Shown: in pieces, positions 16,731 through 63,312 of the stretch
Position numbering within the stretch: position 1 is the first letter of the stretch
How the letters are laid out: each line of letters opens with the position of its first letter
The notes under the pieces: generated by a model
Told to the model about the DNA's origin: nothing
Seen by the model: the letters and a program-made list of their open reading frames with translations, nothing else
Databases searched by the model: none
Source: Trichosphaerium sp. ATCC 40318
Lineage: Eukaryota; Protista; Tubulinea
Length of the DNA stretch: 64,000 nt
Direction: 5' to 3'
Assembly (NCBI GenBank): GCA_038496445.1
Contig: JALMLS010000255.1
Coordinates: forward strand, 124,001 to 188,000
Translations under genes and position numbers: made by a program

Positions 16731-17146
16731 TGTCAATGGCATTGCAAAGTAAGTGAATAGAAACAATGTCCTTAGTGTGCTTATTGTGAGTAGGAAATAC
16801 CTCAAGTAATTGACACTACGTACACGTTTGTGCTAGACTTTGAAGCAACTATCTAAGTTTTTGTAGTGACTGGCGTGCTGTTCATAATACATCAATTCTA
16901 CTCTGGATAGATCATTTTGAGCACGTGATTTAAAAAGAAAAATCAGTTTTGGTTTTTTTGAAACTATTTATAATACTGATTGCCCAAGTGCTTAGGAATC
17001 AACTCAAAGAATTTCGTGAAAAGAGAAAAATAAAAAAATATGAGAATCAAAAACACGTTGTTGAGGCACAAATAACAGACTTGGAGCTATGGAAACATTA
17101 CTTAGAGAATCAAAAGCGAACACTCGAAAGTTCCATGGCAGATTAA
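16731..17146 (+). CDS. Small coiled-coil hypothetical protein (start uncertain)
   Basis: Exons splice to 'EIPQVIDTTDWRAVHNTSILLWIDHFENQLKEFREKRKIKKY...ESSMAD*' using a GC donor at 16921. The first exon is unresolved. Confidence 0.45.
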
Positions 17147-17364
17147 AAGACATATGCTCCAACGTAGTAAGCATTGACATAAATGAGCACAATGATATCA
17201 CAAACCTTGTACAAACATTGCGAACAATTTGTTTCGTTTTTTATTGCAATTACCATTACATTTGTACATCCCTACAGAAGCTTATAACATTCATAAAACT
17301 TAACGCTTTTGTTGCACCGGTCCAAGCAATTCTTTAACAAGTATTCCTTCCCACAAAAGGCGTT

Positions 17365-18757
17365 ATGGCTACATGCGAAATAGACGAGGTGAGGAAAAGT
17401 TGAATGCGTATACATAGGTGTTTATAAAGAACTATGAATAGGGAGCGTTACTAAGAAAGCAACAAATACCAAAAAACAAGCCTCTAAAGGCTAATAAAAT
17501 AAGACAAAGGGTAAAAAACAACGAAATAGCGTATGGGCATATGGTTCTAGAGTTCGCTACTAGAGGTATTGCGCGGATACTTGATGTACGTTATTAAAAT
17601 GAAAAACTTTCATTTTGAAGTTGTTAAACATACAAACCACGTGAAGAAAACGTGTCAGGAAGAGTTTAAACCACAAAAATATTTCTGACGACATTTCAAG
17701 GCTACACCTGCCGATTTTGTTGTCATAGATATGGAGCATAGGTGCGTTTAGTACTAAATTGGGTTTTAAAGGTATTAACCGAAATAGTGGCTTTGGTATT
17801 GACAAGGTTCACGATCTTCTTTCTTGGTTTTCAGGTCAACATAAAAGAAACACTCCAGTCTTCTAAACATCCTTAGGTGTATCGATTTCGCCCATCGTGA
17901 GAGTACCAGATACACAATACGACTTTATAGCGAGAGTATTAGATGCAGGTGCTCAAGGTAAGCTTTCCCATAGAAAGATAGATTTGAAAATAGAGTTTGA
18001 ACTTATCACAAATAGGCATCATGGTTCCAAACGTTAAGAATCCTGAACAAGCCAACAAAGTTATTGAGTATGCTAGATATGCTCCTAAAGGTATAATATT
18101 AATCCGGGAGTATATACTCACAACAGTATTCAGGAAAGCGAGGATTGGGACTAGGCACTGCACATAATGTACAAAGAGTATTAATTACTCTTTTAAGTAA
18201 TTTGTTTTCAGGACTATATGGCGCCAGTGAGTGCATCTGAGTATCTCAAAGAAGCAAATAATAATAACTATATTATCTGTCAAATAGAGAGTGGTGAGGC
18301 AGTGTCTAAAATTGAGGAGATAGCAAGCATTGACGGTAACTTTCTTAATATAAAAAAACGCTTATAAAAAGTGAATTTTACTTTTTATCAAGACGTACTA
18401 CTCACGTGATTTAAAAGGTGTCGATTGTATCTGGATAGGACACTTTGACCTTTGTAGTGATCTAGGGATCCTCCAAAAGACAGATGATCCTTTCCATCAT
18501 CCAGAATTTGTTGACGCTTTAAAGAAAGTTGTTGCTGCTGGAAAAAAATACAAAAAGCAAGTCGGTATTCAACCTGGAACTCAAAAACAAGCTAAAGAAT
18601 GGATAGATATGGGGTACAAAACATCATTTAACTGTCTCAACAACTTACAAATCATATTAGATTCGATGTCATCTCATTTGGATGCGATTTTGGTGTTTAC
18701 AAAACTGCATTGACACAAAACATTTCTTCTTTGAAAGAGTACAAATCAACTTGTTGA
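17365..18757 (+). CDS. HpcH/HpaI aldolase/citrate lyase family protein, multi-exon
   Basis: 'IARILDATPADFVVIDMEH', 'PIVRVP', 'RVLDAGAQGIMVP', 'CQIESGEAVSKIEEIASIDGVDCIWIGHFDL'. Confidence 0.88.
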
Positions 18758-59559: not shown

Positions 59560-61237
59560 TCAAGTGAAATCTGCAATAATATGTTTAATAGCAGTATATG
59601 TACTAACCACTGCAGCTATGACGCCAAACATTGACATCATTGCATGCCCAGAAAAGTAAGCTAATTCTCCAAAAGATTGGCCAGTTGTTAAGTTTTTTTC
59701 TTTGTTGTTTTTTGCAAGTATCGTCAAGTGCATTAGTGGTGGAAGTATAAATGCTGTATAACTTAATCCAAGTCCACTTACAATATTGATTAAATCCGAA
59801 ATATGAGGAATGATGAAAGTCAGTGATAGAGTGAGAACAATCAAGAAAACATCAAGTATTGCAACTTCAAGAAAAGATACCTTCTTTACCTTTTCATCCT
59901 CAATGTTTTTTGGACCAGAGCATATCTTGCTCTTAAAGTATAGTATCCAAGATTCAAACATAAGCCTTGGAGGAACCATAACAATAATATATGTAAATGT
60001 AAGGTCAAACACAAGAAGAGCTTGTGCAATCTTGATGTAAATTGAACTGCTCAAATTAGAAAAAGCAAGTTGTTTCACGTCTGGAGCAAATAGCATAAAT
60101 CCAACTAATCCAAAGAATCCATTAATAATAGTAACGATTACATAAGCTGCTCCAGTTGCTATATAAAAGTGTTTTGGGTTCTGCATGTTATTCTCAGGTT
60201 CAACCATAAACATAGGAACAGAGAATAAAAAAGCAACAGCACCAAAGAAATCTGGAAGTTTCGCAACATCCAAGGCAGGTAGGTCTTCTGGAGGTGTTAT
60301 TTTATGTTCTATAAACCCTGCAACAATTACAGAGATAGCACCTAAAACATTGAATAAATATAAATGTGTCAGGGAACACTAGAGAGAAGGGAGTAGGAAA
60401 CAAGCTCTATATCCAAAAAAAAAAAACTTGAGATTTCTTCGTTCAAAAAAATGGTTATAACACGTACTAATGATAAACACTAAATCTCCAGCAAGTGATG
60501 TATATCCGAAAAACGTAAATTCTTCCCAACCTTTGCTTTTGGCAAAGTCCTTAGCGAGAGTAATAACAAGAATAAAGGCAGCCATCATTAGTTTATAATA
60601 TGTCTCTCCAAGTGGGTATACGTTTTCCATTGTCGCTCCAGAGAATGATATATATACAGCACAACCTCCAAGAGTAACAACTATTATAGCAAATTTGACA
60701 CCATACGCCTAAAAAAGAAGAATCAGTACCCAACTGTCAAAAAAAAAGAAAAAAAAAGAATATTACAAAATTGTGACAATTGAGGGGTTTTGTCGTACGG
60801 ATATTATGCCAGTTGTAGCTCTTGCGATATGGGAATAATCAACATCTCGCCTGGAACCAAAAACTTGGCGCTTACTCCATATTGTAAGAATAATAGCGTA
60901 GTAACTAAGCATAGCTAACAACCAACCTCGTCAGCAAAAAACTAAAAAAAGAAGGCATGAAAGAGATAGCGTACCGAGCACTATAATGCCTACCAAACCT
61001 CCCCAAAACCCTGAACCTTGCATTGCGAATGGTAAAAGGAATGTTCCTGCACCGACTACATATTTGATAACTGACAGGAAAGTGTGAAATGACGATGACC
61101 TACGCAAAGTGATGAACAACTAGCCAGCTAGCATTTTTGGTTTTTTGACAACTTTTAGAAACACCATTTTCAGCTTCTTACCTTTTAGTACTGTTTGTTG
61201 ACTCTATAAGAGGCGTATCGACGCCTTGAATACTCAT
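59560..61237 (-). CDS. Amino acid transporter (Aa_trans/AAAP, SLC36-like)
   Basis: 'SSFHTFLSVIKYVVGAGTFLLPFAMQGSGFWGG', 'FFGAVAFLF', 'MQNPKHF', 'FILPPLMHL'; about 11 hydrophobic segments. Confidence 0.88.
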
Positions 61238-61416
61238 CCTCGTGTTGCTTGTATGGTTTTCTAAATTCTGAGTGACGAATTCGTTGTGAACATTTAGTAA
61301 AACTGACTAATTTGGAAATCAAGGATAGCACGATTTATTGCATTTTGGGAAAATTACTTGTAAACTTCTTTTTTTCTCTGAACTGTGAAGTTTCTTGCAA
61401 CCTCTTCCAAGCTAAC

Positions 61417-63312
61417 TTAGCATAGTCTTCCCATTTTTTGAAGTATAGATACTATAGCGTCACCTATATCCTTGATATCTTGCATATCGTTGTAGATCTG
61501 AGCGCTTATACGAACATACAAGCTTCCATTAAATCGTTTGATATTTCCCTCTATTTTGTACTCGTCCCTAAGTGCTTTGTGAATTTTCACTTGTACTTTT
61601 CCGATTGAGTTGTTATGTTCTTCTTGTTGTTCTTTAACAGGTTCCGAAACAGGTAAGCGGACAGTCCTTTATGTCAAAGAAATTTAGAAGTGATTTAACG
61701 AACAAGTTCGTCGTACACTATAGAACCTATCACTTTTCCTTTCAACGACTCTGTTATTTCACCTTTGGAAAAAAAAATAGTTTAGACTTTCGTGAAAATA
61801 CAAGGCGTGTTTTTACCTTTGTACGCCCAATCTGTTTTCCATAACGTTACCAAGTAATTACCTTTTGGAAAAAATTAACATTATACCACAAACGTCATTT
61901 TTGTGTACAAGCCCAGTATGCGAGATTATGCATGTAATCCATAATTTTACGTTTTCCAATCTTTTCATAAAATTGAAGTCCAGTGATAATAGATAAAAAT
62001 GGTGTACAGTCTTTCGTCCCTGTCCAAAAAAATTGAGAATTTAACCCATTTTCATAGCCATGTGAAGTGACAACACTCTTCACCTGGATCACAAAAATAA
62101 GAACAAAAAAAAATTATCCACAAAAAAAAAAAAAAAAAAGAGCTTGCCTTTTCTCTGTGTTCCTTCGCAACATATAAGAACGCTGCAGAGTTACAAGCAT
62201 AAAGCCATTTATCTTTGAACAGATTATCAGCATCTTAAAAAATCAAATCATATTTCACGTGCGTAAATTAGAAGTGTAAAAGTCAGGTTTGAGTGCCTTC
62301 ATGTCCAACTCAATTTGACCAACTGCATGCGCACCATCTACAAGGACAAGGATACCACTAACACTTTCAAAAAAAGGCTGTACACAATATGTGGATGTAC
62401 CGCTTGTGACACATGTCTATTATTTCCTCCACTGGGAATATAAAGCCAGCCGTGCTGTTGATGTGATCGACACATACAAGCTTAACTTCTTGCGATAGAC
62501 CTGCCTCAATGCGCTCCAATATCTACGATAACATACATTAGCATCATCACTTTTTTGGTATCATCAATTCATTGTACGCTATCGGAATCACAAGGTAAGT
62601 CTATGATGACTTTAACAAGTTCAACACCATCTACATCTCGCCTGTATTTGCACGTGTTGTTTATAGCACCTTGAAGACAAATTAAAGGATTTGTATGGCT
62701 ACCTCTCTTACCATATCCAACGCTCAAGTACAGTATCTTTTCTCCTTTTTTGAAAGGCAAAGATTTGATTACTGCGTTGCATCCTGTTGTGGCGTTTTCA
62801 ACAAATACAATATCATCCACATCAGCGTCTTTATGAAAAACACGTGTTAAAACTTTCTAGAGATACCACAAACACGTGACGTACTGACAAATGCAGCAAC
62901 CTTTTTAAGAGCGTACAACATGAAATAAGGCATCTTATCACAAATAAACCTGACTGGTTGCAAGTCCTAAAGTTCTGGTTTACTTTTAACTCACTCCATG
63001 AAGTCAAATTGTCATACAACTTGCTCAAGCCATTGTTGTCGTGCGTAGGTAACGACCTTAGGTCTTGAGCCAAAACATCCATTATCTAGCATCTTTATTA
63101 GCACGTGGTTCATCTTCGAACGTCGTTTTTTGTCAAAAAACTTTTCGCGTGCCTAAGTATATAAAGGATTGATCTAACGCAAAGTTTTTACGCATTGGAC
63201 GTCCTAAATCTGCTTTGATGAATTTATCGCTACAAAACGTTGGAAAAAGCCAACTAGGCTCCTCATCAATGTCTTTAGTTAATTTCCAATCTTCTACAAT
63301 ATAATCTAGCAT
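61417..63312 (-). CDS. PLP-dependent aminotransferase class V (L-cysteine desulfhydrase / Egt2 / CefD-like)
   Basis: 'YLDNGCFGSRP', 'IVFVENATTGCN', 'VDHI', 'LVDGAHAVGQ', PLP lysine in 'FYTSNLHKWL', 'WTGTKD', 'YVRISAQIYND'. Confidence 0.9.

Follow-up and report, generated by a model that had tools for sequence, protein, structure and literature searches.

GC-AG introns in a Trichosphaerium contig and their coupling to an over-represented CACGTG palindrome

Within a stretch of 64,000 nucleotides of the genome of Trichosphaerium sp. ATCC 40318 (contig JALMLS010000255.1, positions 124,001 to 188,000 of the forward strand; hereafter the window, in whose own numbering all positions are given), about 6% of introns begin with GC rather than GT. 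This observation is confirmed as real and beyond chance, and the excess over the usual share of around 1% consists of donors that read GCACGTG, in which a C at the second intron position (+2) completes the palindrome CACGTG, itself the most over-represented hexamer in the window. The introns concerned are ordinary U2-type introns in which C replaces T at donor +2. We favour, at a probability of about 0.6, a reading in which GTACGTG donors were turned into GCACGTG by pressure for CACGTG, a change tolerated by the spliceosome.

Frequency of GC-AG introns

The window is gene-packed and has a G+C content of 36.8%, with many very short introns per gene; those confirmed by RNA measure 42-115 nt. GC hexamers had been reported at 14 donors by an initial annotation made from the sequence, and all 14 introns do indeed begin with GC and finish with AG, the acceptor AG lying 46-75 nt downstream and being preceded in each case by a CTRAY-like branch motif. 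None of the 14 has a U12-type donor (RTATCCTT), ATCC being found at +3 to +8 in none of them. The last base of the exon is G in 8 of the 14, and nine of the donors carry ACGT at +3 to +6, the commonest pattern in this species; the bases at +7 and +8 of the GC donors differ from the profile of GT donors. Ten of the introns are independently backed (three by direct RNA evidence, six by homology and one by indirect RNA evidence) and none is contradicted, with the gene model being the sole basis for the other four. The introns, which are referred to below by the position of the donor, are as follows:

16921-16995, plus strand: GC-AG intron, 75 nt, donor GCACGTGATT; indirect RNA support
19744-19795, plus strand: GC-AG intron of a CDC123 (D123) gene, 52 nt, donor GCACGTGACT; direct RNA joint
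19969-20021, plus strand: GC-AG intron of the same CDC123 gene, 53 nt, donor GCACGTGATT; direct RNA evidence
22473-22529, minus strand: GC-AG intron, 57 nt, donor GCACGTTTTT; direct RNA evidence (X1)
22637-22698, minus strand: predicted GC-AG intron, 62 nt, donor GCAAGTTTGA; gene model only
36274-36331, minus strand: predicted GC-AG intron, 58 nt, donor GCACGTGCTT; gene model only
38643-38688, plus strand: GC-AG intron of an actin-related protein gene, 46 nt, donor GCACGTGGTA; homology
41996-42051, plus strand: putative GC-AG intron of a P2X-like gene, 56 nt, donor GCACGTGATT; gene model only
42809-42858, plus strand: putative GC-AG intron of the same P2X-like gene, 50 nt, donor GCACGTGTTT; gene model only
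43828-43877, minus strand: GC-AG intron of a beta-propeller (2qe8-like) gene, 50 nt, donor GCAAGTTTCA; homology
54725-54772, minus strand: GC-AG intron of a cholinesterase-like carboxylesterase gene, 48 nt, donor GCACTCTCAT; homology
62084-62147, minus strand: GC-AG intron of a class V aminotransferase-like gene, 64 nt, donor GCAAGCTCTT; homology
62213-62262, minus strand: GC-AG intron of the same class V aminotransferase-like gene, 50 nt, donor GCACGTGAAA; homology
63086-63152, minus strand: GC-AG intron of the same class V aminotransferase-like gene, 67 nt, donor GCACGCGAAA; homology

The census was made with a small gene finder that models splicing and had long open frames and the RNA-confirmed introns as its training set. 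Of the 17 RNA-confirmed introns it finds 16, and its predictions for the window come to approximately 243 introns, 20 of them with GC donors. Among these 20 calls about seven false ones are to be expected, and the eight that lie beyond the 14 sites listed above are predictions only. As runs with decoy dinucleotides showed frame-fitting alone to be weak evidence, reliance was placed on RNA and homology. With the total taken as approximately 235 introns, the GC-AG share is 14/235, or 6.0% (95% confidence interval 3.3-9.8%), against an average of 1.3% across 61 species (PMC3033335; p = 3e-6); counting the ten supported introns only, it is 4.3% (p = 1e-3 against the same average). The GT-AG share is given as 98.3% in animals, 98.7% in fungi and 97.9% in plants (PMC7072748). 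The initial estimate of 14 in roughly 200 introns, set against a typical value of about 1%, therefore holds.

RNA evidence

RNA contigs were compared with positions 16800-22790, a span that includes five of the GC donors. Runs X1 and X3 are spliced transcript contigs of the same organism, and X2 represents transcripts of a relative, being approximately 5-10% diverged in its exons. Scattered exonic differences from the window show X3 to come from another strain or haplotype. At least 14 of the RNA joints listed are of the GT-AG type.

Three GC introns, at 19744, 19969 and 22529, are precisely spliced out. At the first of these the joint 19739>19792, found in both X1 and X3, is printed as 'AC..AA' with four ambiguous letters, and sliding it by four gives 19744-19795 with GC..AG, the sole standard reading; the flanking exon matches Pfam D123. 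In the same gene an X1 contig has a loose end after 19968, the next 17 letters of which match 20022 onward, giving the intron 19969-20021 with GC..AG. A gene model restricted to GT picks the GT at +5 of GCACGTG at both of these sites, but the contigs lack the letters GCAC, and use of that GT as the donor is thus excluded there. This disposes, at these two sites, of the concern raised with the initial annotation that nearby GT donors might be used instead. On the minus strand, X1 has loose ends at 22472 and at 22530, each identical in sequence to the exon on the other side, which gives the intron 22529-22473 with GC..AG; its donor is the only GCACGT donor that does not complete the palindrome.

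Support for the intron at 16921 is indirect: a piece of an X3 contig starts exactly at the predicted acceptor boundary, 16996, its 962 preceding letters lying elsewhere, and the bin depth of RNA is compatible with an exon at 16847-16920. The predicted intron at 22698 would make an in-frame join between an open exon of 126 amino acids and the RNA-confirmed next exon. The earlier suggestion that the spliceosome tolerates GC donors is borne out by these contigs with exact GC..AG junctions, direct evidence being available at three donors and indirect evidence at 16921.

The loose ends also define a GT-AG intron at 18336-18417 on the plus strand (82 nt), which carries a CACGTG 9 nt upstream of its acceptor and which the gene finder misplaced at 18395-18479. 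X2 loose ends near 16973 and elsewhere found no match anywhere in the window.

Homology evidence

Six of the predicted junctions are spanned by peptides that align to solved structures without a gap at the junction itself. The peptide across the 38643 intron (acceptor 38689) aligns ungapped to actin 79-135, and the upstream exon matches Pfam Actin. In the class V aminotransferase-like gene, a single ungapped alignment to 9aza 204-262 covers both the 62262 and 62147 junctions, the former restoring the HK motif of the lysine that binds pyridoxal phosphate (PLP), and the 63152 junction, FIYL|DNGCFG (acceptor 63085), aligns across to kynureninase 16-49 (E 4.6e-4). The peptide across the 54772 junction, GQSAG|AAS, matches cholinesterase 165-229 without gaps, the active-site GxSAGAAS motif included, and that of 43877, WPDGL|SFGPD (acceptor 43827), aligns across to 2qe8 260-309.

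The claim that conserved motifs are restored by GC donors thus stands for the actin-like, HK lysine and GQSAGAAS junctions, all of which align ungapped, but the P2X junctions which it also included are supported by the gene model only. For 41996 the junction peptide returned nothing useful from PDB, and the exon downstream of the 42809 intron aligns to P2X1/P2X4, with the alignment beginning three residues past the junction; searches of PDB and Pfam were uninformative for both P2X junctions. At 36331 there is a possible, weak in-frame GT alternative nine bases upstream, at 36340. Within the predicted intron 36274-36331 the palindrome occurs twice, at a distance of 23 nt (GCACGTGC ... GCACGTGA), and as RNA the two copies could pair together.

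Coupling of GC donors to the palindrome

The predicted donors in the window have the consensus AG|GTACGT; the base at +4 is C in 53% and A in 30%. Most eukaryotes have GTAAGT or GTATGT donors, beside which C at +4 is unusual. The most frequent donor hexamer is GTACGT (23 of the 223 predicted GT donors), in agreement with the initial description of GCACGT as the +2 T>C variant of a common donor. At +7 the GT donors have T in 37%, A in 30%, G in 17% and C in 17%, and at +8 they have A in 33%, so that neither G at +7 nor A at +8 is preferred. Compared with GT donors, the GC donors are richer in G at +5 and in T at +6.

Among predicted or verified donors, those of the form GYACGTG have C at +2 in eight cases and T in two, and those of the form GYACGTH, which do not complete the palindrome, have C in one and T in 21 (Fisher 3.6e-5). 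When 16921 is added, the C:T ratio at palindrome-capable donors is 9:2, against 135:21 at other NACGTG sites (p = 0.65), and the constraint for T at +2 therefore seems to be minor compared with the force favouring CACGTG. In the window as a whole, GTACGT occurs 58 times, GTACGTG 3 times and GCACGTG 31 times. GC donors in which the palindrome is left incomplete number six, or 2.6%, and do not significantly exceed the usual rate (p = 0.09). The predicted donor at 49361 on the plus strand is the only one preceded by an exon ending in CAC; there, CACGTG is completed with G at +3 (CAC|GTGCGT), a base found at that position in 9% of donors otherwise.

Distribution of CACGTG

The palindrome forms the background against which the GC donors have to be seen:

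889-63107, no strand assigned: CACGTG, 72 dispersed copies, with the extended preference AT-CACGTG-AT

CACGTG exceeds its Markov expectation 7.6-fold (order 1), 6.3-fold (order 2) and 4.9-fold (order 3), and its flanking preference is symmetric, with a slight asymmetry in the direction of transcription. Introns carry 2.17 copies per kb, intergenic DNA 1.03 and exons 0.57, which corresponds to 11-17-fold, 5-6-fold and approximately 4-fold enrichment, respectively, over the expectation specific to each class. Predicted coding sequences (CDS) hold 18 copies, compared with 3.4 +/- 1.7 after synonymous codon shuffling (approximately 5-fold), and these are found in all three frames; as this excess goes beyond codon usage and is indifferent to frame, the pressure acts on nucleic acid and not on protein. 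The palindrome is present in 40 of the 243 introns, at scattered positions save for a spike at +2 (8 of 42). Copies are evenly distributed along gene bodies, with near-exponential spacing, and a reading of CACGTG as a promoter element was rejected on account of this even, near-random arrangement.

A tandem duplication of 85-89% identity, with copies at 10945-11667 and 12757-13460 and also at 12201-12397 and 14028-14224, affects a gene in which VTVTGSGGV...GDDVISASRTD-like exons recur. Copy B has ATCCACGTGAT at 13048 where copy A, at about 11240, has ATCCGTGAT, so that a 2-bp indel, not a substitution, makes or breaks the palindrome; a second CACGTG (11280/13085) is common to both copies. The indel is a hint that turnover of the motif does not proceed by substitution alone. 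Elsewhere in the window, at about 1000-2100 on the plus strand, there is an ATP-dependent DNA ligase gene with the KLDGIR adenylation motif in the frame 1272-1685 and a Pfam DNA_ligase_A_M match at 1704-2060.

Discussion

The explanation that we favour for the association between GC donors and the palindrome is as follows. The genome would be under strong pressure for CACGTG, independent of genomic compartment, and a GTACGT donor with G at +7 would need a single transition, T>C at +2, to contain the palindrome; as C at +2 would be the one donor change with which the major spliceosome can cope, nearly all palindrome-capable donors would by now have become GCACGTG. The source of the pressure may be a mutational or repair drive, for example methylation-directed correction of T:G mismatches, or equally selection on a DNA-level function of AT-CACGTG-AT. 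Since it would be the palindrome pressure that drives the donors, the GC-AG excess would be a by-product and not an adaptation of splicing. A more specific version, in which a sequence-specific drive at the DNA level (methylation-directed T:G correction by a Vsr-like nuclease together with a C5 methyltransferase being one candidate) writes CACGTG, overwrites the almost invariant T at +2 in donors a single step short of the palindrome and so reshapes the splicing code, is put forward tentatively, as something possible rather than probable. No gene for a DNA methyltransferase acting on CACGTG is present in the window.

A number of observations weigh against palindrome pressure as the explanation. 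If T were being replaced within the palindromic context, its one-mismatch neighbours might be expected to be scarce, but in the 64 kb they are weakly and unevenly depleted: the ratio of observed to expected counts is 0.5-0.8 for AACGTG and approximately 0.4 for CTCGTG, and for TACGTG/CACGTA it is 0.64-1.0 window-wide and 0.44-0.82 in introns (counts 6-23), TACGTG not preceded by G not being depleted. Two GTACGTG donors remain, at 60467 and at 7203. Four of the 14 GC introns lack independent support, and the census rests on a gene finder which, when decoy dinucleotides are put in place of GC, still yields 3-27 false 'introns' (GC: 20). Finally, the change from GT to GC is presumed rather than observed. 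CATGTG and CGCGTG, which a transition would produce from the palindrome, are somewhat in excess in non-coding DNA, and taken together the neighbour counts neither establish nor exclude a directional repair drive. The 7203 donor, on the minus strand, retains GTACGTG and has a full CACGTGAT three bases later (GTACGTGAACACGTGAT).

Searches for relatives with orthologous introns returned little: a metagenome scan with the actin-like exon gave no match, a search of representatives with the class V aminotransferase exon gave distant matches only (best E 2e-8, 42% identity), and a homologue search with a transporter exon of 272 amino acids gave no match at 1e-10, too strict a threshold; an exact-protein look-up found no record, and an atlas search told nothing of taxonomy. 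The initial proposal that a process generating CACGTG may be rewriting splice donors is upheld as regards the coupling of GC to completion of the palindrome, and not as regards the direction and nature of that process.

Two alternatives would place the cause in splicing itself. A GC donor might be viable only where G at +7 (and A at +8) improves pairing with U1/U6, GCACGTG then being selected as RNA and the overlap with the palindrome being secondary; GC donors of other species do have a stronger consensus, such as CAGG[T|C]AAGT in Globodera (PMC4901422), and the richer G at +5 and T at +6 of the GC donors described here would agree with such compensation. However, the GT donors have no preference for either base, and G at +7 falls outside their consensus, which argues against it merely compensating for a weak GC donor. 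Compensation also leaves the near-absence of GTACGTG donors unexplained, and six GC donors splice without the GCACGTG motif; we therefore regard it as unlikely. An Rfam scan of the window for U1 and U6 found no small nuclear RNA (snRNA) gene. There is also the possibility that CACGUG is an intronic RNA element, either a splicing enhancer or a protein-binding site, which licenses GC at the donor. The enrichment of the palindrome is indeed highest in introns (11-17-fold, compared with 4-6-fold elsewhere), and its flanks are slightly asymmetric in the transcript direction, but an RNA element would not account for the enrichment in intergenic DNA and in all three frames of the CDS, nor for a motif that is found in just 40 of the 243 introns and is scattered apart from +2, and we consider this unlikely as well.

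The remaining alternatives would remove the GC donors or give them a separate origin. If they were artefacts of frame-fitting, the true donor would be the GT at +5/+6 within GCACGTG or some other nearby GT; a GT-only model can thread most of the loci through GCAC|GTGA or a nearby weak GT, and the decoy donors reveal how permissive frame-fitting is. Against this, GCAC is missing from the RNA contigs at 19744 and 19969, three sites have exact GC..AG junctions in RNA, and six further junctions are fixed by homologue alignments that are ungapped at the junction. Mis-annotation is thus refuted for 9 of the 14 sites and could still apply to 36331, 41996, 42809 and 22698; as an explanation of the whole we find it very improbable. 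Lastly, the GC donors could have been brought in by an introner-like mobile family carrying a GC donor, for which introner-derived introns of dinoflagellates, mostly with GC-AG borders, provide a precedent (PMC11282704). However, when the nine GCACGT introns are aligned the mean column identity is 47% and the alignment is invariant in the donor alone (the first 6-7 bases), and the lengths of the GC introns (46-75 nt) are ordinary. As the nine introns share no sequence past the donor, an introner-type family was rejected as their source, and we give it almost no credence.

Palindrome pressure acting on donors, which we prefer, would have consequences beyond this window. Few signals in eukaryotic genes are as conserved as the intron-initial GT, and known departures towards GC are tied to very GC-rich genomes or to introner families; in this AT-rich genome the departure instead tracks one hexamer palindrome. 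In donors that can complete CACGTG, C at +2 is about as frequent as in unconstrained DNA, and this would offer a natural gauge of the small fitness cost of a GC donor against the force that maintains the palindrome, with hundreds of natural test cases for GC-donor tolerance to be expected genome-wide. For annotation, gene finders that accept GT only would mis-thread approximately 1 intron in 17 here, often by taking the GT that lies four bases inside GCACGTG, with a shift of frame as the result. Were the DNA-level drive to prove true, it would be a case of repair bias altering the splicing code of a whole genome.

Comparison with known systems

No report combining GC-AG introns with CACGTG, and no report of an iterated palindrome in a eukaryote, was found in the literature. 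The introns described here resemble canonical U2-type GC-AG introns in their GC..AG termini, ordinary length, CTRAY-like branch motifs and precise removal from mRNA, and differ from them in their frequency, approximately 6% compared with approximately 1.3% (PMC3033335), in the dominance of GCACGTG over AG|GCAAGT, and in having G as the final exon base at only 8 of the 14. Certain algae, Globodera and dinoflagellates also have a raised proportion of GC donors, which their major spliceosome processes. The extremes are Aureococcus anophagefferens (39.6%), Micromonas pusilla (22.2%) and Chlorella (7.7%), all three of which were linked by Iwata and Gotoh (PMC3033335) to very high G+C content (approximately 66-70%); in Globodera the GC-AG share of 3.5% was called uniquely high (PMC4901422), and in dinoflagellates GC-AG borders are prevalent in introner-derived introns (PMC11282704). 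In contrast to the algae, the window has a low G+C content and its excess is tied to one hexamer palindrome, and unlike the dinoflagellate introners its GC introns are not a sequence family.

With regard to the palindrome, the closest likeness is to HIP1 (GCGATCGC), the highly iterated palindrome of cyanobacteria, which has been linked to orphan DNA methyltransferases (PMC4390886). Both are short palindromes that occur many-fold over expectation and are dispersed in coding and non-coding DNA, but CACGTG is a different word, a hexamer, and is found in a eukaryote, where its collision with the splice donor has no prokaryotic counterpart. In Escherichia coli, the bias of very-short-patch (Dcm/Vsr) repair raises CCWGG and lowers its T-containing neighbours. 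Such a directional change of T to C within a palindromic context is what GTACGTG>GCACGTG would need, although the depletion of TACGTG/CACGTA that would be expected from it is weak here (0.44-1.0 of expectation). The GC introns of this window are therefore of a known kind, U2-type GC-AG, yet their frequency is unusual for an AT-rich genome and their donors form a class that is defined by an iterated palindrome.

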